DNA from: Aplysia californica
Taxonomy: Eukaryota
Length of the DNA: 64,000 nucleotides
Direction: 5' to 3'
Assembly: GCF_000002075.1 (NCBI RefSeq)
Contig: NW_004797276.1
Location: 2,239,950 to 2,303,949, forward strand
A model generated the notes under the pieces. It was not told the DNA's origin, did no database searches, and worked only from the letters and a program-made list of their open reading frames with translations. Shown here piece after piece: positions 35,643-63,081 of the stretch; the stretch's first letter is position 1; each line of letters opens with the position of its first letter. The translations under genes and the position numbers were made by a program.

Positions 35643-35754
35643 TCTGACGAGAAACTTTCTTCTTCTGCATGCATATTCTTGATACAGTATTTGCAGAGAA
35701 AATGCATTTAGTCCGAACGAGCGCCTTTTCTAATATGGGCAACCGCTTAAATAA
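35643..35754 (-). CDS. Variable exon V1
   Basis: CAG/GTAAGT, 112 nt: LFKRLPILEKALVRTKCIFSANTVSRICMQKKKVSRQ. Confidence 0.88.
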
Positions 35755-36161
35755 CTGTCAAATACAAGCATCTGTGTGAGAACAATGCATAGCTCAACAG
35801 GCAGTACACATATCACTTAGCCCTTGATGCATGGTTTGACAAACTTTGGAAAAATCTTAACTTTAAAAAAGATGCCACATAGAGAGAACAGGAATAGGTT
35901 GCTCTACTATATGCAACAGAAAAATGTGTTCATCTTTATAAAACAAGCCATGAACGATGACAAGTCACCACTTGATGAAGCTATGTCCAATAGTCAACAT
36001 CAAACACTGGCCAAAAAGACAATTTCTGGGGCCTCTACAAGTCACTCCAGCAGCAAAAACAAACTTTTACTTTTTGAGAAATAAATTTACAGAAGTCAAC
36101 AAACTACCTTCAATTTGAACCAACTGTAAACAAGGAGTCTGAATGAATGTAACATCATTAC

Positions 36162-36261
36162 CTTTCTTTCGCTCTCGACAAAGTCGCTCACATGCCCTTT
36201 GGCGGAGGAAGTGCATAGTGCGAGCGAGATCATACCTCAGTAATGGGTGACGAGAGATGAG
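36162..36261 (-). CDS. Variable exon V2
   Basis: CAG/GTAATG, 100 nt: LISRHPLLRYDLARTMHFLRQRACERLCRERKK. Confidence 0.88.
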
Positions 36262-36511
36262 CTGAACAAATAAGCAAAATTGTATTCCCACATGTCTGTC
36301 ATACATACCCTTTTTTACTAAACAATTTCGCTCCCTGCTTACAATACACACAATCAATATTTGCCTGGAATATCATGGAGTATCACAAAAGTAGAACAAC
36401 TTTGAACCTCTCAAAATTGCCAATAACCTTAAGAATTTGGTACCTGGAGAAATCCTAGAAAATTACTGACAGGGACAAAAGAGGAATAATAATTCTTACT
36501 AATAAGATCAC

Positions 36512-36626
36512 CTGTAAATTGACACTTTCTATAAGTTCTTCTACTTTTCCGGTCTTTGGCAGTTTTCGCTAAATACCAAGAAGTTGTCTGGGAGCTGTAC
36601 CGCAGCAAAGGCATTCGGGCTACCAT
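36512..36626 (-). CDS. Variable exon V3
   Basis: TAG/GTGATC, 115 nt: MVARMPLLRYSSQTTSWYLAKTAKDRKSRRTYRKCQFT. Confidence 0.85.
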
Positions 36627-37214
36627 CTATTCAATTTCACCCACGAACATGGGGGAAACGGTGGGAAAGAGAAATAGCACTTGAAAAACACCCGAAAAAA
36701 ATTTAGAACAAAATTCACACTTTCTAAATGATTTGGTGCTTGACGTGAGTGGACATTACACTTTCAACCCCAAAAATCTCAACTTTGTTTGGAACATAGA
36801 ACTTGAACAAGAGCCTAAAAAAAACACACAAAAAAAAACCTTGCTTCGCCTCATAGAACTCAGAAATGATTATGGGGTATTGTTGAAAGAAACACAGACA
36901 ACACTGTAACGCACAGTCTGGAGGACACAGCAGGCCCGCAATACCATGAAGAAAAAAAAATAGTGGAAAGGTCTATAATTATTAAATATGCATTTGCTAA
37001 CCATTGCCAAATCCCACGACTCAAGAGGCTTGTGCTGCTTAAAAAAAATAAACAGCTCGACCTACCTATAACAGCCAGATAAAACCATGCAATCCAGCTC
37101 GAAAGTCTAGTGAGCAAACAGTACATCTGACACAACTGATTCAGTCACACACACAATAAAACCTTAATAAAATATAAAATGACTTCATTCACATCTAAAT
37201 AAAACTAGTTTTAC

Positions 37215-37320
37215 CTCTCACACGCTTTGTCCGATTGTAGTGCCTGTCATTTGCATTCTTTACGAATACTTGGCTTAGCCAGGACATATTTTTCTTTAAT
37301 AATGGTATCCGTCTTGTTAA
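37215..37320 (-). CDS. Variable exon V4
   Basis: TAG/GTAAAA, 106 nt: LTRRIPLLKKNMSWLSQVFVKNANDRHYNRTKRVR. Confidence 0.85.
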
Positions 37321-37596
37321 CTATACAAAGAAACAGTCCAAGTTGAAACAAGGTAAAAATACAATGAAAACTGACATTTGAACCCGAAAGACTTTAGGTG
37401 CTGTGACATTTTACCAATAATGCAATATTTCTCAATCTCTTCCAATCAAGTCTCAGATGTTTGCAATTTTGAAAAGCCACTGAATGAGACCTCTCCTCCA
37501 ATGGTTATAATAGCGAACGGTAATTACTGAAACTCGAAACCGGTGTGGTATATCCAAAATATAAAAAATACTTGAGAAAAATCTTTCAAATCTCAC

Positions 37597-37708
37597 CTTG
37601 ACACATAAGTGCCTTTTTATTCTTGCCTCTTCTATCTTTGGCAGTTTTGGCCAAGTACCACTCTGTTACACTGGCCTTGTACTTCAGAAGAGGCAGCCGC
37701 GCTAACAT
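37597..37708 (-). CDS. Variable exon V5
   Basis: CAG/GTGAGA, 112 nt: MLARLPLLKYKASVTEWYLAKTAKDRRGKNKKALMCQ. Confidence 0.88.
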
Positions 37709-38033
37709 CTGAATCATTACTCGGTGACAACATAATTCCCATCAAGAAGGTATGCACTTTAGAGTAGGAATAACCCCATAACCCTTTGACTACTTGGTGA
37801 AAGCTTCAATTTCATGCGTGCAAAAGTACAGCATAAGGGAACCAGATACAATACTAATCTTCAGAAAAAAGACTGTATGACGTTTCAAAATGCAGTCTAG
37901 CTTACACTTAGTTCTTTAACAAGAATGACAGTAACGAACAAGACTACGAAAAGACACAACATTTCGTGGGCTCATATCTTCTTCACACGAAGAATTCTTT
38001 ACTCAAAGAGTATGAACTGGGGTACAGTATTAC

Positions 38034-38133
38034 CTCGTTTACGACCTCTATACAGCCTTTCACATGTGCGCTGACAAAAAACAGCTGAAGTGCGTGTTTG
38101 GTCATACCTCAACAGAGGAACACGCATAAACAA
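38034..38133 (-). CDS. Variable exon V6
   Basis: TAG/GTAATA, 100 nt: LFMRVPLLRYDQTRTSAVFCQRTCERLYRGRKR. Confidence 0.88.
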
Positions 38134-38665
38134 CTACACCGGAGGGAAAAAACCAAAACAAGACAAACTCATTATGTTTCACACAATTGGACACTGCATC
38201 AATTTTCATTTTCTTCATAGAGTGTCATCACATATCTTCCCAGGAAGGTAAGCCCCTACCACATGCTTGTGATTTTGATGCTTTGATAGAATACTACGGA
38301 TTCATAGACACATAGCTACTTACGGCTGGAAATTCCCTATCGAAAAGATTTTACCAGCACCCGACATATTTCTTAAAATGGGCATATCACAGAAAAATTG
38401 TGTGTGTGTGTGCGTATGTGTGCGTGCATGTTTGTGTCCCCCCTCTCCCAAATCAGTGGGCTAACCAAAAACCCCCGAATTCAAGATCAAGAACAAAACC
38501 CATCTGCAAGCGACAAGAAGCAACAGAATGAACTCACCAACCCGTTAAAAAATATGAATGCAGCTTTGACACACCTCATACCAGACAAAGTCAGTAAACA
38601 TTGCAGGGGAGGGAAAGGTCTTAAAGAGACCTGAAACTTGTCCCACAATTAAAGATGCTGCTCAC

Positions 38666-38771
38666 CTTTGGAATAATAAACCTTTCTACTCTTTCTGTCA
38701 CTGGCTGTTTTGGCCAAGTACCACACTGCTCGGTGCACACTGTACTTCAAGATAGGTGTGCGCAACAACAC
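38666..38771 (-). CDS. Variable exon V7
   Basis: CAG/GTGAGC, 106 nt: VLLRTPILKYSVHRAVWYLAKTASDRKSRKVYYSK. Confidence 0.88.
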
Positions 38772-39131
38772 CTGGCTCACAGCAAAGACAATTTACAGAG
38801 ACTCCAGTATATTATACTTTACAATCATTAAGAGAAAGCCCAGTTACTTTTATTAATCCAAAAGGAAATCCCTGCTAAACAAAGTGAGGATCAAACTGTG
38901 GTGCAACAGATGGCCAGGAAGTACCTAGCACCTCAAGGAAAGAGAAACATCAAAACTTCTCCTTTAAAGTACCAGTTCATTATAAACAATAGAAAGTAGA
39001 AACAAGACAAGACTCGAAAGACAAAAGCAGAAAAAACTGCCACGGTCCTGAGACCAACTTTCTTACATTCTTAAACACCCCTGGAAGTAAAAATCGCTGA
39101 CTCAACAAATGGACCCAGTTGAACCACTCAC

Positions 39132-39249
39132 CTGCAAATTGTCTTCGCCTTCTGTGAGTCATTTCATACCTTCTGTGCTTTGCATTAATAGCCATGGTGG
39201 TCTCCAGACGCCTTACATTGTACCTTAACAAAGGCATACTCCTGACCAG
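39132..39249 (-). CDS. Variable exon V8
   Basis: CAG/GTGAGT, 118 nt: LVRSMPLLRYNVRRLETTMAINAKHRRYEMTHRRRRQFA. Confidence 0.88.
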
Positions 39250-40011
39250 CTGCAAAAATGTATCCTCTTATTCTATTACCCTTTAGACCAATGTCTAAAA
39301 GAAGACATTTTTTGTTCCATTTATTTACTCCCTTGACTTAAATAAAAATGACCAAGTAATGCCACTTGCCCGTCTTTCCTATTCTTAAAGAACAACATTG
39401 TAACACTTCAGTTCTGGATATTTCTAGACTAAAAGGCCATTTACACAACACCTAGCACTATATAGACCCAAGGAAAGCCAAACAAGAAAAACTAAATCAA
39501 GACCGGCTATTGGCTACCACTCCCTGTTTTTCAAAGTGTTATTACTTAGTCTCTTCCAACAATCCAAAAGAAAAGTCCATGCAAGGCAAAACCAAAGACA
39601 ATAGGTAGAGCCAATCAGAAAATATGACCATGTGAACAGGACCAGGGAAGCCTCTAAAAAAGTAATATTCAAATTGTACTTGTTATCGACCATCGCGCAT
39701 TGTAGTACATACTGAGAATTTGAGTATAAAAGTGCATTCTGAACACAAACTTTCCAGTCGTTGAAAGTCGAAGAACTGACACAAAGCAAACAGTAAAAAG
39801 CTGAATATTACCTTTGAAGATAGTAAGCATCTATAAGGAAAAAAAACCCAGCAGTTTCCATGGACAGAGAAACCAATGACAGAGACAGATCATATTCACA
39901 AAATTCTAACGGTTGAAAGGCAAGGACAAAGACAACAACACCACCATCATAACATCAACAATGATTGTTTCGGACACCAAGTACCGTTCTCAAAATCATG
40001 TGAACATGTAC

Positions 40012-40126
40012 CTCGGAGGCTTGGTCTGCAAGCTTTTCTACTGTATCTTCTGTCACTTGCATTTTTCGCAAGCATATATTGCAGTCGAAACATGCTAGCA
40101 CTCAACACAGGTATTCGTCTGATCAA
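40012..40126 (-). CDS. Variable exon V9
   Basis: CAG/GTACAT, 115 nt: LIRRIPVLSASMFRLQYMLAKNASDRRYSRKACRPSLR. Confidence 0.83.
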
Positions 40127-40242
40127 CTGTTGATGAGACACAGTAAACATAAATGTTGTCTGTGCTTGAAAAATGCCTTCGCTAACAAAGAAATTTACTC
40201 CAAACAGATGTTACCTCTTCATAGTTATTTAAAGGTACAAAC

Positions 40243-40354
40243 CTCTTGCTTTCAAACGGCGTGTCGAATCTGCTTTACGGTCACGAACACTTTTAGCAAG
40301 ATAGCCACTTACGAAAGGGATGTTAAGTCTAAGAACAGGAAATCTTAATAACAT
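40243..40354 (-). CDS. Variable exon V10
   Basis: CAG/GTTTGT, 112 nt: MLLRFPVLRLNIPFVSGYLAKSVRDRKADSTRRLKAR. Confidence 0.85.
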
Positions 40355-40529
40355 CTGAAAATGTATTTGTCGAATTAGGATGAGAACAAATTTATACCAA
40401 AGTCTTGAAAAATAAGAGCTCATTGCCTGGCACCTGGAGGTATCTGGTGAAACAACTCAAAAGTCACACGGAAGTGCATTTCATATTTTAGCCTCAGAAT
40501 TTATACTGACAGTTATTTTCTAAACTGAC

Positions 40530-40635
40530 CTTTCAAACGTCGAGCTAGATTTGCCCTCCTGTCCTGCGCAGTTTTAAGCAAATAAAAACTTGACAATTTC
40601 ACATTAAATTTCAGCAACGGCAGTCTTGAGACCAG
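40530..40635 (-). CDS. Variable exon V11
   Basis: CAG/GTCAGT, 106 nt: LVSRLPLLKFNVKLSSFYLLKTAQDRRANLARRLK. Confidence 0.88.
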
Positions 40636-41024
40636 CTGTCAAAACGAAAATAAAAAATATGAAAAAATAAAATTCTGCAGGATACACCCAAGTTTGCAGA
40701 CATTCATGCCAAGAGCATTTCTGAACAACAGTTGGTGCCTCAAGGCAAAATTTTATCTTGGATGTAATCAAAACATGACTGCCACTTCTCAGAGAGTAGA
40801 GACAAGAAGTCAAAAAGTGATATGAATACCGAGGATCCAAAAATGACAAGCTGATCAGCATAATTAGATAAAAAATAATAACCAGAAATAATTTTTTTTA
40901 AAAACTGCCTAGGGAGATCAAGACAATTCTACCATCCATACCACCAAATGGAACCATTATATATCTACTCAAGGTGCCAGAAGGAACCATGGACACAGAA
41001 AACTTCATACGGCCTTTTACCTAC

Positions 41025-41127
41025 CTTGATTTCTGCGGCTGTAACTACTTCGCCGTGCTGTCCTCACTCGAAGCATCCAACTGACATAATTTACATTGGC
41101 ACGCAGAACTGGTAACCGACGCAACAA
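41025..41127 (-). CDS. Variable exon V12
   Basis: CAG/GTAGGT, 103 nt: LLRRLPVLRANVNYVSWMLRVRTARRSSYSRRNQ. Confidence 0.88.
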
Positions 41128-41539
41128 CTGTGGCAACGTGATACACAAGAAAAATTCCTAATTCTATCCCATAAGTCAACTTACATTAAAAAAACAGGCA
41201 CTTTCTCAATCCCGTGCCAGCAGTGAAACTAGATGTGCTCGAGGGCCAGCAGTTAGTGAACTTTTGTAATGTCCAAACCAAAGAGACTTTTCAGCTTCTG
41301 CAGGACTCACCATCTGATCTTTTGTTATTGAGGAACTGAACAAAACTCTCTGAACCTTGACCTCCAAATATAAAAGTTAACCGCGCACGGTCAAAGGAGG
41401 TGAAAGAAATATTTTGAACCCTGAAAGTTTTGAAAATACACTTACAACCATTTTCTCTTTGTTTACAACATGCCAAAGCAGATCACTGGGAGATCACAAT
41501 ACATGACATACAGGGATTACCCCAGGGCTTTTTACATAC

Positions 41540-41642
41540 CTCGATTTCTGCGGTTGTAATTAGTTCGCCAGGCGGTCCTTACTCGAAGCAAATAACTCAC
41601 ATGTTCCACATTTGCACGAAGAAGTGGTAACCGTCTCAACAA
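41540..41642 (-). CDS. Variable exon V13 (close paralog of V12)
   Basis: CAG/GTATGT, 103 nt: LLRRLPLLRANVEHVSYLLRVRTAWRTNYNRRNR. Confidence 0.88.
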
Positions 41643-42107
41643 CTGACAACGCAATTCATAAGGTTTTTAATTGTTGCTTAGGTTTTACCAAGCTTCATTA
41701 TCCTTAAAAAATCTGTTTCATATGAAGGTGCTAGCAGTGAAACAATTCCTTAGCTCAGCAACCAACAGACACATGAACATGGACAAAATTAATATTTCTA
41801 GTTACTTTGATAGAGAAAGCACATTTTAACTCAGCCATACTGTTACAAGAAAAACTTAAGAGCTTTTACAAGACATTGGCTGACCCGACAGAAAAACCAG
41901 GATAAATTCCAAGAAGATATTTATCAGTGAATTTCATGTTTTGATGCGGCTCACTTATTAAAAACTTCCCAAGACAGAAACTAACATTTCGTCTCATCAG
42001 AGGAAAAGGTCCTTAATGTATTTCTAAAAATATGAAAAACACCCACAAGAAAAAAATTTAAGGATCATGCACCCAAAAAGTGTTGTGGCTGTAGCGAAAT
42101 CACAAAC

Positions 42108-42213
42108 CTTGAAATTTCTTTCTTTTTCGATAATGAATCTCTGCTGATCGAGCACTGAACAATGAAGTCACTCGCAAGGTGTCGTATCGAAGCAAAGGGA
42201 GGCGTGAGAAGAG
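42108..42213 (-). CDS. Variable exon V14
   Basis: CAG/GTTTGT, 106 nt: LFSRLPLLRYDTLRVTSLFSARSAEIHYRKRKKFQ. Confidence 0.87.
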
Positions 42214-43178
42214 CTGTTAGAGTGATACATGCTTTACTTGAGACCATAAAGCCGATATTGAAACCTACTTGCTTGAGGAATGCACAATAAATGAACTCAA
42301 AAGCCAAGTAGCAGAGCATCTAGCATCCTTAATGATCCAAAGTTCAAAGTAAACAAGACCTTCCTAGAACACTATTCACATCTTACTTATCAAAACAACC
42401 TGCCAAATACAAAGTAGGCAACTCAGAACTCTGAAATCAACACCTGAACTATAAGATGACAAAAATATCCTCCCCACAATATTAAGCACTGAAAGCAACC
42501 CCTACCCTCCACCTCCTGAAATGGATCCAAGGCACTGGTCTCGACTAGGTGATATAAATTGCAATGTGTGACTGAAATTTTTCTAAGGAGGCAACTGGCA
42601 AAACAAAACATGACTAGAACATCAACAAGAATAACGGAGACCACGTGAAAGCATTAGTTTTTACGTATAGTAAGTTTTACAGCGCTTGCAATTGTGAAAA
42701 ACGAGTTCATTTGCTTAAATTTTTAAAAAACTTTTTACTTAGAAATAGCTCAAAATATTTTAAAATACTAGAAAAAGCATCAAGTGCTATGAGACACATA
42801 TAGTCCATCAAAATCAATGGCAGACTTATGACTGTTAATTGCACAGTTCAAGTCAATGTCTCTGCTCAGTAGCAGTAAAAATGAAGGTGCTGCGGTGAAA
42901 TGGGTGACACCTTTACAAAAATCCTTCCTCAATAGTTACCAGAACAAGTTTAGCAAATTCCATGAGGTACACCAAGACCCAAAATACACCCCTTTAAAAA
43001 ATCCTTCTTGGCTGAAGGTTGGGTTACAAAGAAAACTTGGACATAAATCATTTGGAAGCATGTTTTTTTTTTATCATCGCTCTAATTTGACAGGTTTGAC
43101 AGGGGGGGAAAAATATATAATGTACGCATCATGTATGTGGGCGTTGAAAAATTCAAAAGATGAAGATTTCCATTGTAC

Positions 43179-43278
43179 CTCTCTTCTTTGCCTCATGATT
43201 TCTTGACCAAGTATTGTAACAAAATCTCGCTGAAACCCTTTTCACATCATATTGCAAAAGCGGCAGACGATGAAACAA
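43179..43278 (-). CDS. Variable exon V15
   Basis: CAG/GTACAA, 100 nt: LFHRLPLLQYDVKRVSARFCYNTWSRNHEAKKR. Confidence 0.85.
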
Positions 43279-44108
43279 CTGTCGAACAAGGATAGGTTGT
43301 GTTACGACATATGTGTTACAGCACTGCCAACACAGAAATGTCCGATGGAGCTTCAACAATGCTGTCAATCAATGCAACAAAGAACAGGGTAAACCCCACC
43401 CCAGGACAGGACGTGTCTACACTTATCTTAACTGGGCAAAAGACATCTTTTGTGAATAAAAAAGAATAGAAGAAAAGAATATCTGGTGCTGAGTGAACTC
43501 ACTATTGAATTAATATGCTACAATCACTCCAAACCTTGCATTAGTCCAACTAAAAACCAAGTATGTGCTCTCACTCCTTTCTTCATTGTTAGCACAACTG
43601 ATTTTAGAGCATAAACTCTGTACTCACTCTACAATACCGAAGCACTGAGTCTGTCCAAAGCAACAACATGCCCGTGCACTAACTTTAATATCAAAACAGC
43701 CATCATCATGTGAAATTCAGGACAAGCAAAACGGAAATCCCTTTGGATAGATCAAAGAAAAATCTCCCAAGAGTCCAGCAACTATTGCAAGACAAAAACA
43801 TACTGATACGGAGGTTCATCACATTTGGAACCAACAACAGGATATGACAACTTATGAATATTTCAGATTATCAGGACTGCGTGTCAAGTGGAAAATCAAA
43901 TGTTGCACACCCCACCCCTCTTTTAGAGTTCCATTGACAGCACAAGAATGAACAAATCAGAGAAAATAATACTTTCCTCTGACTGAGCTGGTTACAACTG
44001 TCTGCCTATGTACTGAATCATATACATATACACAAGAATTACTGCAGTTCATTGCACTTGCTCTATCAAGAGAAAAAATTTCTAGTCGGGTGACAATGAG
44101 AAGCCTAC

Positions 44109-44229: not shown

Positions 44230-44409
44230 CTGTGTACAACACAAATAATCACAACCCCAAAACTTTATAAGTTCAGTCTTTCAAATTTCTAACTTGGTGC
44301 CATGCAAGGAAATTTACAATGTTTTCAGATGAAAGAGCTGTAACCAACCAGTCCATGTACCAAGATTAGCTTTTGGTCAAAAGTAGATAATTCTACAGAA
44401 AAATATCCA

Positions 44410-44510
44410 TTGAGCTCTATACAGTAACAGAGTCCACGCCAATGTACTACTGAAATGTCCCGATCAGTCGTTTTTTATCAAGGCCCAAAAACAGGAATAT
44501 TAGCTACCAG
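44410..44510 (-). pseudogene. Pseudo-exon (dead paralog of V17/V18)
   Basis: Intact acceptor, then LVANIPV, a +1 frameshift, LGLDKKRLIGTFQ*. The flanking intron matches that of V17 and no donor is recognisable. Confidence 0.75.
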
Positions 44511-45012
44511 CTGCCAAATTCAAGAAAGGAGCAAATTAAATACTCCAGGAGCCCAATAACAACTAAACAGAGGGAGGGAAAGTCCTGTACAGACTTTTGC
44601 GAGACAAGAGACCTACTTGATGTATATGCCAGAACAGAACAGCATTATGCCTGCTGCCAACACAAAACAGAATTAAGCCTACAGATCCTTGCACCATGTA
44701 AGATGTAAACCTGTCAATGAGTCAGAATTGGAGCCTCATAAAAAAAAGAAAGAAAGATAGCAACATTTACAATAATTTCCTAAACAATACTGGCACAAAC
44801 AGCGCTGAATGAGCGAATGCACATATCCACCCACACACTCAAAGCCAATAGGACAACAAATCTCCAGGAGATACAACCTGCTATTATTGTTCCAACTGCC
44901 CGCCCAAGCATTCTGATTATCTTCTCTAATTCTAAAAGACCACGGTATGATCATTACAATATTTGTTTTAATCAGTTGAACTACAGAAAGACACAAGTAA
45001 ATCTAGACTTAC

Positions 45013-48364: not shown

Positions 48365-48586
48365 CTGCAGAAAAAAAATAAAATGCAGACCACAGAATAT
48401 GCCATGCTCCGTGCTCCAGTAATCCCACGGAAACAACCATACCTTAATAGGACAATTATCACAACTGCTGATGCTGTGGTACAAGCACAAAAGATTCACA
48501 TATTTCTATTAACATCTTAATTCTACACCATAACTAAAGAAATTTCAAAGGAATGAAATTTGGTAGTTGCAATAAGACAGGCAAAC

Positions 48587-53629: not shown

Positions 53630-54042
53630 CTGTACAAAGTACCAGTGTACTAATAACAAAACTACAGACAGTACAACAGACTTTTTTCCTAAAGAATCCA
53701 ATTCCAAAAGGAGCTGTGACAATACAAAATGTATTTTTCTCAATACAGGGGTTTACAGCTACCAATTATGCGTTGATCTACTTTGTGGCCTATGTACAGG
53801 ACCTGTACAACTAAATCCTCCTGTAGACCTCTCATCTAATTTAAACCTTTTATCAGTTTCTTATTTAAACCTCTTATCAGATTCTAATCCAAAGCTACAA
53901 TGACTCCACAGATGAGCACCAAGACAGACTCCCAACAAAACCAAGGACCAAAGTATCCAATGACTGATGCTGAGAACATATCTCAGGGACAATCAACTCT
54001 GTTCCACTGCATACAGAAAAACAAAGAAACAGCCAAACTTAC

Positions 54043-54527: not shown

Positions 54528-54641
54528 CTGACAATCAAAAGAGTAAAATTCTACAGGATAGCACTGATGCAGCACATGAGCCCTTTTGGCAGTTGGCAAG
54601 CAGTTAAAAACAAAAGAGCACAACCTTACAAGTCCACTTAC

Positions 54642-54753
54642 GAGATGCCTTAGAGTTGTAAGTGCGGGAAGTTCTCCTGGACATGACACTGCGGTACAAA
54701 TACTGAGCAGCAGAAGACGCATCTGCTCCAAGGACAGGCATTCTGCCAAGAAG
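54642..54753 (-). CDS. Variable exon V35
   Basis: TAG/GTAAGT, 112 nt: LLGRMPVLGADASSAAQYLYRSVMSRRTSRTYNSKAS. Confidence 0.88.
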
Positions 54754-55627
54754 CTAATCAGAACGCAATTCAAGCACTTTAAGGAAAAATGTTAATACCA
54801 ACAGAGGAAAAGAGCCTTGCCAGGTGTGAAAGAAACTATGCCCGGGACAGAAAAATAACAGACATAACATGCACCCTCACATCATCTGAGCAGCAAAGTG
54901 AGAACTATGCTAACCAAAAAGAACCTGCCACTTCGACCCCTAGCGATTGACAGTCTCCTTGTTATGCCTAAGAAGACAACATTCAATGATTGAAAAACTT
55001 ATTCCGAACAAAGGCAATTTATATCCGAACGTTTACCAAAAAAGCAATAAATAAGGTTATGTTGAAACCATAAATTCAGAAACAGGGGCTCACGAAAGTG
55101 TATTTTAGAACTGAACAGTTCATACACAGACAATGACAAGGAGCTGGGAAAAGCAAGACCAGAAACAAAAAACCTGACAAGGAACGATATAAGATGATCA
55201 GTGTGCCACCTCCACATGTGTTCCCATTAATGAGGGCAGACAAAAGTCGTGAGGTACAACTACAAAAGGTGTCTTCTCCAGTCTTTTTAAATCTTTGGCA
55301 CAGTCCATTCAGACGACATAATCTTTCCATTCAATCATTTAATTCCTCAGACTTTCGAAATGTAAGAGCACTAATCAGGCCATCATATCACAAGACATCG
55401 GTTATCCAGAATACAGAAACGATGTCAAAGATTGTTGCAGACGACAACAGCAAGGCTTTGTTAATGAAAAAACCCATACTACCATAATTTAAAATCAAGA
55501 ACTAATTTTCTAATAATTTGACCCTGTGCAAGCCCAATGAGTAGAGAAACATCTTCCCAGCCCTCACCCTTCTAGAAAACAGGCAAACACATGACCTGAT
55601 ATTCAGCACCTGGAGTGCAGTACTTAC

Positions 55628-55748
55628 CATACATTTTGTTAAGTCGATCTCGGAAGAAACGTTGGCATCTACGTGACTTGGAACTTTGATGAAAGTAATT
55701 TGCCACACGAAGTATATCACACCCCATTATTGGCAGACGACTTACCAG
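55628..55748 (-). CDS. Variable exon V36
   Basis: CAG/GTAAGT, 121 nt: LVSRLPIMGCDILRVANYFHQSSKSRRCQRFFRDRLNKMY. Confidence 0.88.
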
Positions 55749-56462
55749 CTGAGAAGAAAATACTCCAGCTAAAATGTGATAACGGCTACCCCAGACAATA
55801 AAAAAGGTCGAGTAAAAAATATATAGACATAGCTACATAATTCTCTACAACTAAAACCACTTTCCAAACCAGAGCATGATAAAACAGTCAAGCACTAAAA
55901 GAAGTATGAAAGAAGACATAAGATTTGGTAAAGATGAGACAAGACACTGAAAGTGTCCAAAGAGCCCAACAAATCAATGCCTTTCTTTGTGGCAAGGACA
56001 AGTACATATTAAGTCATACTGAGAAAGAATCCAAACTCTATCCAAGCATGAAACAAAACTGAAATGGTCCATAAAGACAAAAATAATACGACAACCTTAA
56101 TGGAAGTAGACAAAAGTGGCAAAAAATATCACTAATCCAAATCAAATTACTCAAATCACAATCTTCAAAGAAACAGCCTTTAACAGGTACTTCAAGGCCA
56201 AACAAGTTTGTTGACAAATATTCAAAAACTGACCACACCTTTCATTTGACACTGCAATAATTCAATAGCTTTCCTACAAGTTTTTCACGACACCATGCCT
56301 CACAAACAAAAGGAAAAGCAAAACATTCCACAACGAGCCAGGTGGGAATTCATTAACATCCCAGTCTGACAGTAACTTCATAATCTCAAAAACACTTGCC
56401 CCACACATTCACCAGCCACTGATGCACACTCTTTCTTACGATTTCATTTGAAAAGCACTTAC

Positions 56463-56568
56463 TTCTTAACCGAAACGATCGCATTAAGCGCCTAGCTTTA
56501 CTGTTATGACAAAGAAGGCGCCCAGCTGTGACAGGATTCAGATTCAGGATTGGTAACCGTTTTAGAAG
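56463..56568 (-). CDS. Variable exon V37
   Basis: TAG/GTAAGT, 106 nt: LLKRLPILNLNPVTAGRLLCHNSKARRLMRSFRLR. Confidence 0.88.
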
Positions 56569-57024
56569 CTAAAACAGGCCAAAAAAAAAGAGGTAAAACA
56601 AAATCAATCTCTATATCAGCTGACCTTTCCATCGACATCTTTCAATGAAATTTCCACAATGAACATTAAAACAACGATAAAGAAAAGCCTAATGTACTAG
56701 AAAATACAATGAAAAAAGCATGGCCATCTTGACTTGGTGAGGTGAACAGAAACCTCCAAAGTAGAAACTTCCATCCAGGACGTATTTTCTATAAGACATG
56801 AAAAGAGCCAATAGGAGGAATCAGTGAAGTGGGACTATTTGTTACTTACTCTGTACAATTGTACTAAGGTTAATTTCTATCACTACTTAAGAGACACAAA
56901 AAATGGTATTGGTTCTGTACTCACAAGACAACTTACGATTTCTGTCACTGACTCAATAAACTACAAACATAAACAAAAGACCTAAACACTAGTCAGCAAA
57001 ATGCTGTACATACGAAGTACTTAC

Positions 57025-57136
57025 TGCTACATTTGAGTCGCCAGTTTCTCATGGTATTTTTTGACATACACCTACGATAAAGAAGATCCATTGTTCTATG
57101 AAAATTTCTCTTCAATACAGGCAGCCTGGAGAAAAG
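57025..57136 (-). CDS. Variable exon V38
   Basis: CAG/GTAAGT, 112 nt: LFSRLPVLKRNFHRTMDLLYRRCMSKNTMRNWRLKCS. Confidence 0.88.
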
Positions 57137-57434
57137 CTGATGACAAAGAACTAATTCTTAAGTTGTATACACCCAAATTGCACCAATAACAATGAACAGT
57201 AAGCAAACTAATGACAGAGCCTTTTTGGAATTGTTGCAGGCAACAAGTAACATCATGAGACAAGTGCTGCATTATATCATCAGCTGAAATCACCTATTAC
57301 AAGGAGTACACCAAAGATGCTTTACAGGTCGACTCTTAACAACAACACAGATGATCTACTTGCTCCTATCAGGAACAGACAGATATTAAATGCACAGGCT
57401 GCCAACGTCCAAATAAACCTTAAAATGTACTCAC

Positions 57435-57543
57435 TAGACTTTTTTAATTTCTTGGCATATAAGACACGTGAGCGAGAGTTTTGATAAAGGCAATTTTCCA
57501 CCCAAGCTGGAGCTGCTCTCAGAACAGGGAGACGTCTCAGAAG
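57435..57543 (-). CDS. Variable exon V39
   Basis: TAG/GTGAGT, 109 nt: LLRRLPVLRAAPAWVENCLYQNSRSRVLYAKKLKKS. Confidence 0.88.
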
Positions 57544-57712
57544 CTACAAGTGAAAGAAAATACAAATCACTGGGACACTGACATTCTCCTTAAGGACTCG
57601 CCCTTCGCTGAAGATGGTGTGTGGCCTCCTAATGCCATGCTTATTTAGAACACAAAGGTAAACCCAGAATAGCAGTATCCTTAGATGGACATATTCTTTT
57701 TTTTTCACTTAC

Positions 57713-57830
57713 TGCTTTTGAGATTTCGACACCGCTTGCTCCTCATGTAAACTTTATTGCGAGAATTTGTGTACATAAGATGCTCAGCCCGATCATAATC
57801 CATCAGAAGGCACGGCAAACGTTTAAACAG
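57713..57830 (-). CDS. Variable exon V40
   Basis: CAG/GTAAGT, 118 nt: LFKRLPCLLMDYDRAEHLMYTNSRNKVYMRSKRCRNLKS. Confidence 0.88.
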
Positions 57831-58482
57831 CTGAAGTGAAAGACAAACACGACCTTGTATCTATATTGACCAACTCTATGGTGCTATGGTGACGAAAAAT
57901 TACCCTTCAATGCCTTTCTCAAGCAGGGAAGACTGCCGTAAATCGTAAAAGAAATTGGTCCAAAGTACTTAACATTCACATACATGTGCATTTTTAGGAT
58001 GGCTGTACGCATTATCACACATGAGAACAAGACTAAACCCAGAATAAGAAAAGCGACTACAAAAGACAACCAACTTCTATTTAGAGTCTAATATGAAAAC
58101 AAGACAAGAAAAACAGAACAAAACTTGACTTCTCTTGTTCAAAGTACAAAAACAAAAAATTGATCAGGTAAAAAAGACATTCACAAAATAAAACACAAAA
58201 ACTACTGGCTTTCGTAAAACAACTCCCTTACATCCAATAAATGTACGTGCATGCAGGTGCAATGTACCTTTTGAACTCTTTGGTAAATTTCTGCTCCACA
58301 CATTATGAGGCCCTACACTCGCGGTTATTCAAAACAATGGAATCATGTCCATTTTTTCTTTTGTACTGACCCAGGTATGTTTCTCAATTCCCCCCTTGGA
58401 AAACCTATATTTCAACAGAAGCTGCTGTAAAAAGATGGTCATATATTACTACTGAGTCTGAGCCTTGTAGGAACCAACTTAC

Positions 58483-58603
58483 TTCTTTGTTGAGCTTGAG
58501 CTAAGCGCTTAGACCTCATGTGCATCTTGATCCGACAATTGGTATACAAAACTTCTGATGTTCTGATGATGTCATGAGATAAGATTGGCAGCCTGGCCAG
58601 TAG
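58483..58603 (-). CDS. Variable exon V41
   Basis: TAG/GTAAGT, 121 nt: LLARLPILSHDIIRTSEVLYTNCRIKMHMRSKRLAQAQQR. Confidence 0.88.
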
Positions 58604-58678
58604 CTAGGATTCAGAAAATGAACACATAAGGACTTCGAACTTGTGTGAAATTTGTATTGTGAGTCAAATGTTTCTCAC

Positions 58679-58787
58679 CTGCATTTTTTGTTCTGGATCT
58701 CATATAGATCTTGTGGTAGGTTTTTTTGTGCAAAAGAAACTCAGCTCTGCCTCTGTTTTGTTTCAATATTGGCAAACGACGAAACAA
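58679..58787 (-). CDS. Variable exon V42
   Basis: CAG/GTGAGA, 109 nt: LFRRLPILKQNRGRAEFLLHKKTYHKIYMRSRTKNA. Confidence 0.88.
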
Positions 58788-59156
58788 CTGATGTTTGAGA
58801 GAAAAACGAAGTAAATTTGAGGTAGACAGACTAACTACAACTAACAAAACACAAAAAATGTCAATCAACACCATGTCCGCACCTTACTTCATTTTCTTTG
58901 ACAGTCTTGAACCATTATATGCCAATTCTACTCGAGTTTTACACACAGACACCATTACCTCTTTTCTCTAACAACTCCGTCAATTGATCAAACAAACCAG
59001 CCACTGCATTTCCAGCAAGCAATAGAGCTCAAAAACACTTAAAACACACAGTCAGTTCTTTTTAGAGTTTTGGTTGAAATCCATTACATCTAAACTCTCT
59101 AAGAAACTAATGGATTCTCTTCTACATAGTACAAAACTAGTTTACCAAGGACATAC

Positions 59157-59268
59157 CTCTAACTATTTGACGAGACTGTCTGCGCCTCATTTTCTCGTAA
59201 CAGTTTATACGCATAATGCACTCAGTTTTTCCAACATTACCCATCAAGATGGGCAACCGATGAAACAA
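59157..59268 (-). CDS. Variable exon V43
   Basis: CAG/GTATGT, 112 nt: LFHRLPILMGNVGKTECIMRINCYEKMRRRQSRQIVR. Confidence 0.88.
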
Positions 59269-59609
59269 CTGAAGAGGAAAGGATGGGAGGAGAAAGAATA
59301 ATTGTCATAAACATCTTGTCCTACTGCTCCGTAACAAACCAAGTGTGAGCCCTGATGACCCTTTAAAATGTGTGGTTTCTTTAGTTTCTTCGAAGATATC
59401 AGCCAGTTAACCTAATCCTTTTCACTGAACAAAACAGAAAGTACCGTCCATTTTTTCTTACATCTGAAGCAACCTTCACTTAAACCTATCAATATCTGGA
59501 ACCTACTCCATACCTAAAGGACAAAACTTTTCCTGAAAAGATCACCAACAGAACTACCTCAACATCAGATGATACATTTACTGAGAGAAGCCAACAGAAA
59601 ACACAATCA

Positions 59610-59694
59610 TCAGTTTACAAGAACTTGCTCTTGACTAGTATTTGAAAAGAAGACAAGGTACATTTTTTTTTAAAATTGGGAGTACTTTAAATAA
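59610..59694 (-). pseudogene. Probable pseudo-exon (acceptor lost, internal stop)
   Basis: LFKVLPILKKNVPCLLFKY*SRASS, preceded by ttttgtcc instead of AG. Confidence 0.5.
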
Positions 59695-59968
59695 GGACAA
59701 AACCGTGACTGAACAAGATCTACAGAACGAACTGAATGGACCGTACCACCAAATGAAGCAAGTAAACACGGTCACCTGATACCCGTTACATAAAATATCA
59801 GCATCAGTAACATCCAAACAATTTTAGGAAATCCATATCGGTCCCACTATTTTTGGCTCACTAACTACCCCATCCATATTATGCAGTTCAGCACTTTGGT
59901 AACTGACTTGTAGACTACTTTTTTAACAATTGAGTGTCAAAACGGACGAACTAATAAAAAAAATATAC

Positions 59969-60074
59969 CATCAAACTTCATCCTCCATCTCGAAACCCTT
60001 TTCTTTCCATTTGTGTAAAGAATTTCAGTACATCTCTCTCGCCAGGCAGCAAGAATTGGAATGCGCCGCAAAAG
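59969..60074 (-). CDS. Variable exon V44
   Basis: TAG/GTATAT, 106 nt: LLRRIPILAAWRERCTEILYTNGKKRVSRWRMKFD. Confidence 0.86.
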
Positions 60075-60517
60075 CTAGGAATGGACAGAATAACAAATTT
60101 AGGGGGAAATGACACAGTTAACCACCATCTTACACTGTAGTTGCCTGTCCCGGTCCCTGTACATTCTCCTCATGCTGTTTATATAAAAATTGTCCACAAC
60201 TGATGAGCACCTTGCTTGCAATATTGGCATTCGCCTAAATAGCTGAGATACAATGAAGGATACACTTTAAAAGAGTGTGCGTTTGATACTAGCCCTTCTG
60301 AAGTTGTTGCACTATCGTCACCACTAGCATAAAGAGCACTCACTAGCATAAAGAGCACAAATAAAAGCTTTTGCATCTCCAATCTGTCTGATAACTATTT
60401 TCTACAAGTTAGAAAGGACCTTAAAAATTGATCTACAAAAATTGTCTGTGGCACACCTTGCTATTTTAGGTTTTAAAAAACTAGAAACTGCTTGATCAAC
60501 ATTCAGTGGTGACTTAC

Positions 60518-60614
60518 CCTGTTTCTGCCTTTGCACTCTCCTCATACAGTTAACATACAAGTATTGCTGTGTGCGTTCTATGCTGTACTGAAGAACGGGC
60601 AAGCGACTAACCAT
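60518..60614 (-). CDS. Variable exon V45
   Basis: CAG/GTAAGT, 97 nt: MVSRLPVLQYSIERTQQYLYVNCMRRVQRQKQ. Confidence 0.88.
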
Positions 60615-60855
60615 CTGGAGTATAGTTGCATTGGTAAAATATTTCAGACTGACCATGCGGAACAATAGCTGAAGTCAGTTTACTCCAAATCATACAGTAC
60701 TGTGGCGAGCGAGTTAGGAATTCAGTATTATCAAAACCTGAAGCCCCATAGTTAGCATGCACTGTTTTATTAGTCAACATTTGCTATTTATCAGCTCAAA
60801 AAGATTTCATTTCACCAATATATCACTGAGTAAATACTACACACTACGTACTTAC

Positions 60856-60967
60856 TTTTGTAAGTTGCCCTCAGGCGTCTTTTTTGCATTTTCCGAGTTG
60901 CATTAATATAGAAAGTCTCCAGTGCTCTTTTGCGGTGGTATGTGAGGACAGGCATACGGAGGAAAAG
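60856..60967 (-). CDS. Variable exon V46
   Basis: CAG/GTAAGT, 112 nt: LFLRMPVLTYHRKRALETFYINATRKMQKRRLRATYK. Confidence 0.88.
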
Positions 60968-61208
60968 CTGGCATTTTGAAAGTAAGTTGGAGGTGACAAC
61001 AAAGAGAATTACAGTAAAAGTAGAGAATTGATCTACAGGAACAACTTGGTCACAATTTCATAGAAAACAGCACCTGAGCTTAACTTCAAGTTTGCAATCC
61101 CTTCCATCGTTTCCACTCACTACATAAAAGTTCCGACTCAAAAACAACAAGAATAGTGGGGCAATTCAAACTTTCATGTGACAGTCAACAGCTGTTTAGC
61201 GTACTTAC

Positions 61209-61335
61209 GGTCTTTCATCATCATTGCATGAGTCCTGGTCTGCCTCCACCTGCGAGAGTTTCTACCTGCCCTCTCGTTGAACATATGCTCTACTCTAAGG
61301 GCATCCTCTCGCAACAAAGGCAAGCGGCCGAAAAG
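61209..61335 (-). CDS. Variable exon V47
   Basis: CAG/GTAAGT, 127 nt: LFGRLPLLREDALRVEHMFNERAGRNSRRWRQTRTHAMMMKD. Confidence 0.88.
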
Positions 61336-61477
61336 CTGAACAGAACGAGAATGAACATTCACTAAGCTCTCCCAGAGTTTACTTCTCGCTGTAATCCCTT
61401 ACACGGGAACCACAGTGAACTCAACAAAAAGAGAACCTTGCCAAAACTGAGATCACTGTGCTTATTCTTTTACTTAC

Positions 61478-61595
61478 TCCACTGAGCTGCAGACTTGTTC
61501 ATCCGCTGAAGCTGATTTCTCTTCCTTGCATTGACATACATTACTTCTTGAGCACGAAGCGCACTGCAGCGAAGTTGAGGCATTCTATTAAATAA
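61478..61595 (-). CDS. Variable exon V48
   Basis: CAG/GTAAGT, 118 nt: LFNRMPQLRCSALRAQEVMYVNARKRNQLQRMNKSAAQW. Confidence 0.88.
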
Positions 61596-61752
61596 CTGGG
61601 ATCACAAAGGAGGGGAAAAATCAGTCTCTTCAAAAATGTTCGGAATTCAAGGGTTACCTCAGAGATAGATCACCCTCAACTTGAACTATAAGATGCAAAT
61701 GCAAACAGCAGCATCTCAGGATGTAAATCAAAGACAAACGATAGAAACTCAC

Positions 61753-61870
61753 TGAAACCAATATCTTTTTGTCTACAGCGCCTCACTGACATCTTCTTCA
61801 TGCTGTTTGCATAGAACAGTGCCTCTGTCCGCAGCGAGTTTTGAGCAAGAACAGGTATTCGTAGATACAA
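61753..61870 (-). CDS. Variable exon V49
   Basis: CAG/GTGAGT, 118 nt: LYLRIPVLAQNSLRTEALFYANSMKKMSVRRCRQKDIGF. Confidence 0.88.
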
Positions 61871-62344
61871 CTGTGCAACACGAAAGATCATGATTATCCA
61901 GAGAAGACAAAACACAGATGGAAGTATGAAGTAAGATCGTCATTCAAACTATACAAGGATTTCCCTCATTTACAGTTTAGTGTTGTGGTCTCAGCCACAG
62001 CCACAATCTATAATATATTTTGGTCCAAGTACAAAAAAATATTTTTGTCTGTCTCTTTTTCTTCATCAATGGTTTTTCGTCCTGGGTTTTATTCTTAAAT
62101 TATCTGTTTGTTCTCCAGCCTGAACCCAGCACACTTTATTCGTGTGGTTGAAACAGGCATATATATCAGTACTTCTTTACTGTTTACACATGTCGTACTG
62201 AGTAAAATTACCAGGAGAACTTTCCCCTGTCCAAGTATATTTTGAAACTTTCAAGCTAAAATTTGTATGCTAAGGCATACCAGTGAAAAGTGGCATACAG
62301 TATTATCTCTGAAATTTCTCTCGATCTCCATCTGCAGCCTGTCA

Positions 62345-62412
62345 GTTTCAGCGCATTGAGCACTTTTTTGTGGAAATGCGCTATATAAATGCAATTTATT
62401 ATTATTATTATT
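62345..62412 (+). mobile_element. Short L2-type retroposon 3' tail inside an array intron
   Basis: cagcgcattgagcac...gcgctatataaatgcaatt(tat)n, similar to 960-1045. Confidence 0.55.
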
Positions 62413-62975
62413 CTCTTCCAGGAACTCTTTTCATTCTTTGTCTACATTGACCATGCACACAACCACGCCCTCTTTTAGCACTAGCCAGCCCTCTGATTCT
62501 TTGTGGAAGTACTTAGCTGAAGAAGTAATAACTAACTTTCACCCTGAATGAGAATCTGTGTGTCAATTGCATAAATGTCATCAGAATCATGGCACTATTT
62601 CCCAGAGCTTTTACATTATTTCAATCCATAAAAAACTCATTTAACACCTCTCAGCTGTGTAAGATTTCTTTGCCATCATTCATAATATTAAAATCAACTG
62701 ACCTACATTCGAATGAGAACCATTACGGTTTGAATTGAGCATTAGATTATTATCTTAGAGTTCTCTCTTCGACATTACTTTAGCGAGGGAAATCATTGAG
62801 ATAAAATAGCACAATTAATCTATTTGCAGTATCAATTCAAATAGGGAATCCCTATATGTTGGCAGCTGGAGATGAATCGTGAGCACAAAAATTCCTGTGC
62901 GTGGTACCAAATGTGTGAATCGCTGGCCAAAACAACTATTAGAGAGTAAATCAGTCTATTTCATAAACAACTCAC

Positions 62976-63081
62976 TTTTGTCCCTGCAGCGTCTGTATGA
63001 CAACTTTGCTGAGCAGTTCTTAATAAAATACAAGCTCGCACGCTTATAACAGCTACTGAGAATAGGCATCCGTGAAAATAT
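62976..63081 (-). CDS. Variable exon V50
   Basis: CAG/GTGAGT, 106 nt: IFSRMPILSSCYKRASLYFIKNCSAKLSYRRCRDK. Confidence 0.88.

Follow-up and report, generated by a model that had tools for sequence, protein, structure and literature searches.

The variable-exon cluster of LOC101860137

The window analysed here, a stretch of 64,000 nucleotides of Aplysia californica DNA, carries 51 cassette exons on its minus strand from position 63081, where the first cassette begins, to 35643, where the last one ends; these are exactly the array ends that a preliminary description of the region had given. The region is the variable-exon cluster of LOC101860137, a heterobranch snail gene of uncharacterised function for which RefSeq records at least 33 isoforms and no paper was found. 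In gene order, four constant exons past the right edge of the window are followed by the 51 cassettes and then by two further constant exons. The exons bordering the array, a cassette-like frame behind it and the cassettes themselves are as follows.

Window 69117-69037 (L002:5037-5117, beyond the window): upstream constant exon (constant exon 4), 27 whole codons, ending in GAG followed by gtatgt
33832..33981, minus strand: downstream constant exon of 150 nt, opening with GC (phase 1) and closing in phase 1
32390..32736, minus strand: last coding exon, with a disordered Gly/Pro/Gln-rich tail, an acidic end and a TAG stop
35366..35572, minus strand: cassette-like open frame past the last cassette, with a poor acceptor context and a hydrophobic stretch, then a stop
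Cassettes 1-10, minus strand, first base/length in nt: 63081/106, 61870/118, 61595/118, 61335/127, 60967/112, 60614/97, 60242/109, 60074/106, 59268/112, 58787/109
Cassettes 11-20, minus strand: 58603/121, 57830/118, 57543/109, 57136/112, 56568/106, 55748/121, 54753/112, 54527/112, 54148/106, 53629/106
Cassettes 21-30, minus strand: 53278/118, 52318/103, 52130/100, 51722/109, 51053/106, 50544/112, 49605/106, 49426/97, 49018/100, 48686/100
Cassettes 31-40, minus strand: 48364/106, 47361/106, 46535/109, 45996/100, 45112/100, 44229/121, 43278/100, 42213/106, 41642/103, 41127/103
Cassettes 41-51, minus strand: 40635/106, 40354/112, 40126/115, 39249/118, 38771/106, 38133/100, 37708/112, 37320/106, 36626/115, 36261/100, 35754/112

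Cassettes were identified with a pattern scan, which returned 49, and an HMM scan, which added two more (51053-50948 and 39249-39132), both without the otherwise invariant Arg4. The HMM gave no match at 35366..35572, and this frame is probably a decayed cassette copy that lies outside the 51. An AG acceptor and a GT donor flank every cassette, and the lengths (97, 100, 103, 106, 109, 112, 115, 118, 121 and 127 nt) are all of the form 3n+1, identical to the set of whole-codon steps reported in the preliminary description. For a donor test that made no use of the frame, each GT in the open frame was scored with a generic donor matrix; the best-scoring donor gave a 3n+1 length in 49/49 cassettes and in both of those found by HMM, for which the chance expectation is about (1/3)^51. 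The earlier statement that each cassette runs from phase 0 to phase 1 holds for 51/51. Both flanking constant exons are compatible with entry in phase 0 and exit in phase 1, and the check that had been proposed for the upstream exon, an end in phase 0, was borne out by its whole codons. The downstream 150-nt exon has a tblastn match to the Lymnaea orthologue and is present in all 15 RefSeq isoforms sampled; its GC joins the last cassette base (G in 32 cassettes, A in 12, C in 4 and T in 3) to encode Gly, Ser, Arg or Cys, as had been described. All 51 single-cassette products remain open through to the TAG of the last coding exon.

Length, splice phase and homology, the properties by which mutually exclusive clusters are recognised (PMC3228551), agree among all 51 cassettes. 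The encoded peptide opens with [LMIV]-x-x-R-[LM]-P-x-L and closes in a basic stretch, Arg4 and Pro6 being invariant in alignment A1 (49 rows), and recent duplicate cassettes share 81% identity. When the genome was searched with a cassette profile, 50/50 matches fell inside the LOC101860137 array.

Single-cassette transcripts and the reading frame

Exactly one cassette was found in 15/15 sampled Aplysia RefSeq isoforms (XP records, which are models), and these used 15 different cassettes spread along the entire array, consistent with the earlier view that the cassettes are alternative and not constitutive repeat exons. Exon borders were identical to the predicted ones in 14 of the 15 isoforms; in the fifteenth, a donor in cassette 52318 is used that gives 91 nt, a length that again satisfies 3n+1. 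A 2-kb transcript contig of another species likewise contained one cassette. As three poly(A) RNA-seq runs had zero depth over the LOC101860137 exons, the statement of one cassette per mRNA draws on RefSeq models and, for relatives, on transcript contigs. Zero-cassette mRNAs are also recorded in relatives, as isoform X43 of Biomphalaria in RefSeq and as a transcript contig of 1.3 kb, so that either the choice is leaky or the zero-cassette form is useful.

Departures from single inclusion break the downstream frame, as had been claimed for zero, two or three cassettes. In Aplysia, cassette skipping turns codon 24 of the constant exon into a stop, 78 nt ahead of the last junction, and double inclusion leads to a stop within the second cassette; the normal stop was reached by none of 1,275 two-cassette orders, by none of 20,825 three-cassette orders and by 0.26% of four-cassette products. 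Zero- or multi-cassette products would therefore carry premature stops and give rise to truncated proteins or, possibly, to NMD substrates. Since the stop of the Biomphalaria zero-cassette isoform lies in the last exon, this product would not be an NMD target by stop position.

The 3n+1 length is by itself an ordinary consequence of exon phase. It is the phase that any functional duplicate must keep and hence an inherited property, from which selection for enforcement cannot be concluded; the phase 0 to 1 arrangement would have been passed to each duplicate, with the frame serving as a fail-safe and not as the chooser. A frame filter only discards products and cannot choose among 51 exons with usable splice sites. 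Of the proposal that the reading frame enforces a one-exon choice, the frame logic stands, whereas 3n+1 cannot pick one of 51 and a candidate selector system is present.

Orthologous arrays in other snails

The full-length Lymnaea orthologue was found with the cassette profile, and a word search then gave LOC101860137 of Aplysia as well as genes of Physella, with 49 isoforms on record, and Biomphalaria, with at least 43. The Lymnaea array comprises 52-58 cassettes (best donor 3n+1 in 48/52) and the Biomphalaria array 40-42 (38/40). Reciprocal-best cassette pairs are collinear between Aplysia and Lymnaea (27 pairs, Spearman 0.986) and between Lymnaea and Biomphalaria (30 pairs, Spearman 1.0).

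A conserved docking block and candidate selectors

The sole strong non-coding conservation in the introns flanking the array is a block of about 260 nt in the intron ahead of it, which contains near-invariant segments common to Aplysia, Lymnaea and Biomphalaria. Two docking segments lie in this block, in the intron that follows constant exon 4.

L002:686-721, minus strand: docking segment D1, core TTTTGGTGCTGTGGTGAAAC
L002:531-560, minus strand: docking segment D2, core TTGTAATCCCTTACATC

Complements to the docking block occur about 30-170 nt upstream of most cassettes. We calculated duplex energies between D1 and the approximately 135 nt upstream of each cassette and used reversed, reverse-complemented and shuffled sequences, all of unchanged composition, as controls. 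Pairing was stronger than in the controls in Aplysia (-22.5 vs about -18, p 4e-6), Lymnaea (-24.2 vs about -17, p 6e-9) and Biomphalaria (-25.2 vs about -16, p 4e-8), and alignment scores for D1 agreed with the duplex energies. Among introns of at least 300 nt, the best D1 match started 20-170 nt from the acceptor in 16/28 cases in Aplysia (7.5 expected), 15/22 in Lymnaea (6.4) and 7/10 in Biomphalaria (3.0), the position being tied to the acceptor regardless of intron length. When the entire first intron was scanned for exact 8-mer complements, D1 formed the top peak in Aplysia and Lymnaea and the second in Biomphalaria. Sense-strand pairing exceeded antisense pairing for 41/49 cassettes in Aplysia, 47/52 in Lymnaea and 31/40 in Biomphalaria, an excess part of which may be explained by the G/U-rich composition of D1, which inflates wobble pairing.

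Coverage of D1 by the Biomphalaria selectors peaks at the core TGGTGCTGTGG, and the Aplysia matches centre there too. Different selectors are complementary to shared docking bases, and their pairings would thus be mutually exclusive. The selector signal is a statistical one: it was found for the cassettes as a population, where in each of the three species it exceeded all three kinds of control, and not for every cassette. About one third of the Aplysia cassettes are without a convincing selector near the acceptor, and both pond snails show a stronger signal. Across the three genomes the docking block does not vary and offers no compensatory double changes. D2 selectors precede orthologous cassettes in two or three species. 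Candidate selectors in the window are given below.

61379..61404, minus strand: candidate D2 selector, 43 nt upstream of cassette 61335, score 46, the best of the array
61084..61108, minus strand: candidate D2 selector, 116 nt upstream of cassette 60967
59068..59090, minus strand: candidate D2 selector of 23 nt in the intron before cassette 58787, 280 nt upstream, score 41-43
57879..57892, minus strand: candidate D1 selector, 48 nt upstream of cassette 57830, score 34
54578..54615, minus strand: candidate D1 selector, 50 nt upstream of cassette 54527, score 40
53710..53729, minus strand: candidate D1 selector, 80 nt upstream of cassette 53629, score 34
48462..48490, minus strand: candidate D1 selector, 97 nt upstream of cassette 48364, score 35
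41727..41745, minus strand: candidate D1 selector, 84 nt upstream of cassette 41642, score 37
41204..41229, minus strand: candidate D1 selector, 76 nt upstream of cassette 41127, score 38
38266..38291, minus strand: candidate D1 selector, 132 nt upstream of cassette 38133, score 40
37380..37408, minus strand: candidate D1 selector, 59 nt upstream of cassette 37320, score 37

The Lymnaea orthologue of cassette 61335 also has a D2 selector, and for the orthologues of cassette 60967 one lies 136 nt upstream in Lymnaea and 108 nt upstream in Biomphalaria.

How one cassette may be chosen

We consider it probable, at roughly 0.78, that one of the 51 cassettes is chosen by competing RNA pairings of the Dscam exon 6 type and that the frame is a safety net only. 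The pairing would form in the pre-mRNA and direct cassette choice: one selector at a time would engage a docking segment, and the cassette behind that selector would be activated.

It seems unlikely to us that splicing is otherwise unconstrained and that the reading frame together with NMD enforces single-cassette mRNAs by degradation of wrong products. Such a filter would fit the uniform 3n+1 lengths, the failure of zero-, two- and three-cassette products to get to the normal stop and the stop of the Aplysia skip product ahead of the last junction, and its principle is known from FGFR2, where frame shift and NMD back up the mutual exclusion of exons IIIb and IIIc (Jones et al. 2001, cited in PMC6071210). 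Those exons are likewise not multiples of three, and their skipping or double inclusion leads to premature stops, but they are two and not 51, and in the snails an annotated zero-cassette form, that of Biomphalaria, stops in the last exon. Unconstrained splicing of 51 competent exons would hardly ever give precisely one, so that nearly all transcripts would be wasted, and a review states that NMD cannot account for large exon clusters (PMC6071210). Moreover, 3n+1 is needed by any working copy with or without surveillance, and a conserved arrangement of docking and selector sequences is present.

To a second explanation, in which the motifs act on DNA or are a compositional coincidence and the choice is made by splicing repressors or activators, steric limits of short introns or chromatin, we give similarly little credence. 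Controls that keep the composition score much lower, the position of the matches is fixed to the acceptor at any intron length, wobble pairs favour the transcribed strand and selectors recur at orthologous cassettes; this has to be set against the G/U-richness of D1, the third of Aplysia cassettes without a clear selector and the finding that no common exact k-mer is prominent among the introns of the array. Some inter-cassette introns, at just 59-85 nt, are short enough to hinder cassette-to-cassette splicing, but most are far above any steric limit. It is highly improbable that the array encodes a constitutively spliced repeat protein or is mostly a graveyard of dead exons with few live copies. 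Tandem repetition, the 81% identity of recent duplicates and 33 RefSeq isoforms vs 51 cassettes could be read in this way, yet a stop is met in 47/49 cassettes when entered in phase 1 and in 46/49 when entered in phase 2, whereas all 51 are open in the single correct frame between AG and GT borders. The one-to-one, in-order conservation of cassettes between Aplysia and the pond snails and the use of cassettes across the entire array by the sampled isoforms speak against this reading as well.

The variable helix and comparison with known systems

The cassette adds about 35 residues, which form a short hydrophobic turn and then a long basic helix, and in a structure model that is confident only at residues 345-395 this helix packs against the helix of constant exon 4. 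No Pfam match, BTB included, was obtained for any of 49 isoforms even at E = 10, and there was no match in a PDB sequence search with the protein or in a Foldseek search with the model; VIA-align with the model returned generic helical hairpins only (best NblA, Z 5.6). A homeodomain-like helix-turn-helix, to which an F-Y-x-N...R-K stretch had pointed, was rejected for want of a Pfam, PDB or Foldseek match. The N-terminal part of about 240 residues is common to snail paralogues with dozens of isoforms ending in different C2H2 zinc fingers, which suggests a family theme of a constant head combined with many variable modules. The protein is probably intracellular, and probably a nuclear, non-adhesion protein.

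Drosophila genes of the lola and mod(mdg4) type combine a common N-terminal part with many alternative DNA-binding ends. The snail gene resembles them in its constant head and many variable modules (zinc-finger ends in the paralogues) but is without BTB, and its variability resides in an internal cassette of a mutually exclusive set and does not arise from alternative 3' ends or trans-splicing.

Dscam1 is the model for RNA structure picking one exon of many, and mutually exclusive clusters of about 50 members are known almost only from Dscam1 of arthropods. An equally large cluster from a different phylum, in a protein unrelated to Dscam1, would offer a natural replicate for testing exon choice by RNA structure. 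In insects, exon 6 of Dscam1 has 48 variants with a docking site and selector sequences (Graveley 2005, summarised in PMC6071210). The snail array is like exon 6 in the use of a single member out of about 50 homologous cassettes arranged in tandem, in its conserved docking element just downstream of the preceding constant exon with complementary selectors upstream of the variants, and in the conservation of cassette identity and order between species. Unlike exon 6, it occurs in Mollusca, encodes a basic helix of about 35 residues in place of an Ig domain, has two docking segments that apparently serve different subsets of cassettes and is known here from sequence alone.

The idea that the gene is a 'nuclear Dscam' of heterobranch snails, a transcription-factor-like protein that belongs to a family in which the other members exchange zinc-finger ends and that itself swaps a basic recognition or partner-binding helix in about 50 versions by a docking/selector switch evolved independently of arthropods, is a tentative and rather doubtful one. 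If it were true, each cell could have a single one of the roughly 50 binding specificities or a random mixture of them. The cluster raises the question of why a non-adhesion, probably nuclear protein should have about 50 versions of one helix, and since Aplysia and Lymnaea have large identified neurons, the isoform choice of single cells is directly measurable.

An array of 51 alternative exons in LOC101860137

The direct repeats in the 35-64 kb region of the window terminate in a reverse-complemented 3' splice site, which places the feature on the minus strand. Scanning for an AG followed by an open frame starting [LFIVM]xxRxP and bounded by a GT yielded 49 cassettes (alternative exons named here by the window position of their first base), with first bases from 63081 to 35754, and found no cassette in a further 40 kb upstream of the array. 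An HMM built from the 49 peptides added two cassettes without the arginine (51053-50948 and 39249-39132). Every cassette has AG/GT borders and a length between 97 and 127 nt; 32 cassettes close with G, 12 with A, 4 with C and 3 with T. Across the assembly (927,310,431 bases in 4,332 contigs), all 50 matches to the cassette profile fall inside this array.

Two pairs of neighbouring cassettes, window 41011-41130/41526-41645 and 45004-45119/45888-46003, share 81% identity and, judged by their sequences, are recent duplications. A degenerate third copy of the latter pair, without an intact cassette frame, lies at window 44485-44538; such duplicates and the decayed copy are consistent with birth-and-death turnover.

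Database queries consisted of individual exons, the cassette alignment or database proteins. When 1.8 billion proteins were searched with the cassette profile, we recovered a Lymnaea stagnalis protein of 560 residues as well as several small ORFs with one cassette apiece. A word search with the Lymnaea protein led to Aplysia californica LOC101860137, an "uncharacterized protein" with isoforms X1-X33, and to orthologues in Physella (at least 49 isoforms), Biomphalaria (at least 43), Bradybaena, Plakobranchus and Elysia. These RefSeq isoform lists already imply alternative cassette use; no literature on this gene came up in full-text searches by locus name or in those combining docking/selector or mutually exclusive exons with molluscs or gastropods. 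The exons surrounding the array were placed as follows, exons 1 to 4 by tblastn.

Constant exons of LOC101860137 (window coordinates)
75570-74806, minus strand, past the right edge: constant exon 1
72364-72209, minus strand, past the right edge: constant exon 2
70782-70711, minus strand, past the right edge: constant exon 3
69117-69037, minus strand, past the right edge: constant exon 4, ending in phase 0
33981-33832, minus strand: downstream constant exon, opening with GC
32736-32390, minus strand: last exon, ending in TAG

In tblastn comparison, the protein sequence of exons 3 and 4 is 100% identical between Aplysia and Lymnaea.

The reading frame as a proposed fail-safe

Donor choice was made frame-blind, each GT in each open frame being scored with a generic donor matrix. 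The top-scoring donor gave a 3n+1 length in 49/49 cassettes and in both HMM-found ones, bearing out the preliminary description, which had assigned this length class to all cassettes and had listed the identical set of lengths. Its reading of the junction was likewise correct, the last cassette base and the GC of the downstream constant exon together encoding Gly, Ser, Arg or Cys. The phase of the upstream constant exon had been named beforehand as a point on which the scheme could fail, and it is 0: exon 4 comprises 27 whole codons and ends in GAG followed by gtatgt.

By frame arithmetic on translated joined exons, single-cassette products read to the normal stop in 51 of 51 cases. A product skipping the array stops at codon 24 of the downstream constant exon, leaving 78 nt to the last junction, and the normal stop lies out of reach for all 1,275 two-cassette and all 20,825 three-cassette orders, so that the earlier statement on zero, two or three cassettes holds. 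Four cassettes restore phase, and only 660 of 249,900 such combinations (0.26%) are open throughout, because a stop is present in 47/49 cassettes when entered in phase 1 and in 46/49 when entered in phase 2.

The further claim that the frame itself enforces the choice of one exon stands only in part. Phase is something that each functional duplicate has to inherit, and a filter cannot select; the frame would thus act as a fail-safe and not as the chooser. A review (PMC6071210) likewise states that nonsense-mediated decay (NMD) may play a part in mutual exclusion without being able to account for large clusters, and it names competing RNA structures as the main mechanism.

One cassette per message

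Exactly one cassette is present in 15/15 sampled Aplysia RefSeq isoforms, which use 15 different cassettes spread across the whole array. Exon borders are as predicted here in 14 of them, and the remaining isoform uses a 91-nt donor in cassette 52318, 91 also being 3n+1. One cassette is also present in the full-length protein encoded by a 2-kb transcript contig from another species. Zero-cassette mRNAs do occur in relatives, one being RefSeq isoform X43 of Biomphalaria and another a 1.3-kb transcript contig; since the Biomphalaria form terminates in the last exon, the clean-up of mis-spliced products by NMD that had been proposed would, judged by stop position, not be general.

Three poly(A) RNA-seq runs from the same species had zero depth over the exons in window 32300-38299. 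The only read pile-ups in this interval are partial repeat matches at 32771-32801 and 35349-35389, where about 1,500 reads per run match only 30-40 nt, beyond which they carry unrelated sequence or poly(A). The pattern resembles that of a short repeat common to abundant transcripts elsewhere and not that of expression of this gene.

Orthologous arrays in pond snails

The orthologous Lymnaea locus (L008) holds 52 cassettes by pattern and 58 with the HMM, and the best donor is 3n+1 in 48/52, the four others having only weak donors. At the Biomphalaria locus (L009) there are 40-42 cassettes, with a 3n+1 best donor in 38/40. The constant exon opens with GT in both pond snails and with GC in Aplysia, giving the same four junction residues. 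Reciprocal-best cassettes are collinear between Aplysia and Lymnaea (27 pairs, Spearman 0.986) and between Lymnaea and Biomphalaria (30 pairs, Spearman 1.0), and hence both the array and individual cassette identities are older than the split of these lineages.

The Lymnaea assembly places the constant exon (L008:59581-59736) ahead of the last four to six cassettes, and a 7-residue copy of that exon's start lies beside a single-N gap at L008:63226-63248, immediately ahead of the last exon. All cassettes precede the constant exon in Aplysia and Biomphalaria, and the Lymnaea placement is probably an assembly problem, not biology. A distant homologue, P0025 (462 aa, from short transcript contigs), has 35% identity and the same N-terminal domain; its one cassette-like segment is closest to the cassette that ends each of the three snail arrays, a likeness that hints that this last cassette may be the ancestral exon.

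A conserved putative docking block and candidate selectors ahead of the cassettes

Comparing the array-flanking introns across Aplysia, Lymnaea and Biomphalaria, we found a single strongly conserved non-coding block of about 260 nt, which contains two nearly invariant segments, D1 and D2, in all three species and has no family in Rfam. Coordinates prefixed L002 refer to the stretch of the same contig past the right edge of the window.

Putative docking elements in the intron between exon 4 and the first cassette
L002:477-796 (window ~64796-64477), minus strand: docking block, ~4.3 kb into the Aplysia intron
L002:686-721: D1 core
L002:531-560: D2

The D1 core is complementary to sequences upstream of most cassettes. 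We aligned D1 with the 130 nt upstream of each cassette and used the same windows reversed, reverse-complemented or shuffled as controls.

D1 alignment scores against upstream windows and controls
Aplysia: upstream 26.2; reversed 23.5; reverse-complemented 23.0; shuffled 22.1
Lymnaea: upstream 29.6; reversed 22.7; reverse-complemented 23.7; shuffled 21.9
Biomphalaria: upstream 30.6; reversed 21.4; reverse-complemented 22.0; shuffled 22.1

Duplex energies also set the real windows apart from controls in the three species (p 4e-6 to 6e-9). The position of the match is independent of intron length, and in introns of at least 300 nt it starts 20-170 nt from the acceptor in 16/28 (7.5 expected), 15/22 (6.4) and 7/10 (3.0) cases in the three species; several seeming exceptions are introns that conceal an HMM-only cassette. 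When the whole first intron was scanned for 36-nt windows matched by exact 8-mer complements ahead of many cassettes, the top peak was D1 in Aplysia (17/49 cassettes) and Lymnaea (34/52); in Biomphalaria D1 ranked second (22/40), behind only an A/T-rich low-complexity window. Sense exceeded antisense pairing for 41/49, 47/52 and 31/40 cassettes, an excess that fits RNA pairing including G-U wobble and to which the G/U richness of D1 contributes.

D2 has strong candidate selectors, that is, complementary upstream sequences, ahead of a few cassettes, with counterparts at the orthologous cassettes of other species: that ahead of cassette 60967-60856 is present 108-136 nt upstream in all three species, one other is common to Aplysia and Lymnaea, and one to Lymnaea and Biomphalaria. 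About one third of Aplysia cassettes have no convincing selector near the acceptor. No motif common to all inter-cassette introns rose above shuffles in an exact k-mer search, whole-intron duplex folding returned meaningless giant loops, and in a wobble-tolerant 9-mer scan saturation by G/U-rich low-complexity windows prevented discrimination.

This arrangement, in which the docking site follows the constant exon and selectors precede the variants, is that of Dscam exon 6 (PMC6071210). Docking-selector RNA pairing would choose the cassette, and the array is, on sequence evidence, probably a large new addition to the mutually exclusive exon clusters guided by RNA structure, outside arthropods.

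The same intron contains an element of 27-31 nt, kept in the three species (L002:2648-2674, minus strand; window ~66674-66648), which is reverse-complementary to the 5' portion of the docking block (L002:~740-768, minus strand; window ~64768-64740) lying about 1.9 kb downstream. Pairing of the two could give a long-range stem of ~26 bp next to the docking core, and this predicted stem might present or mask the docking site. A U6atac-like Rfam match in this intron (L002:2700-2794, minus strand; 19.2 bits against a gathering score of 33, E = 0.14) is probably due to chance.

The encoded protein and its neighbourhood

Pfam yielded no domain for single proteins or for all 49 isoforms, the PDB no match to the sequence profile, and ESM Atlas, Foldseek and a wide VIA-align search were blank or non-specific, the fold searches returning generic helical hairpins only; the idea of a homeodomain was dropped on these results. 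An AlphaFold model built with the isoform alignment was of low confidence overall (mean pLDDT 42) and confident only at residues 345-395, where a helix from the end of exon 4 is followed by a short turn, the R-x-P-x-L motif, and then by the cassette-encoded helix, which is long and basic. The N-terminal ~240 residues are common to snail paralogues whose dozens of isoforms differ in their terminal C2H2 zinc fingers, which as context, not proof, points to a possibly nuclear, modular family.

Upstream of the gene and on the same strand, C2H2 zinc-finger open frames lie at L005:5648-5935 and L005:6647-7318 (minus strand; window ~99.6-101.3 kb, in a stretch further along the contig) and may serve a neighbouring paralogue from this family as alternative zinc-finger ends. 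Several copies of one open frame of ~80-100 residues occur on both strands among assembly gaps at window 18793-19930 and 24521-25423, and look like a dispersed repeat or transposon fragment.
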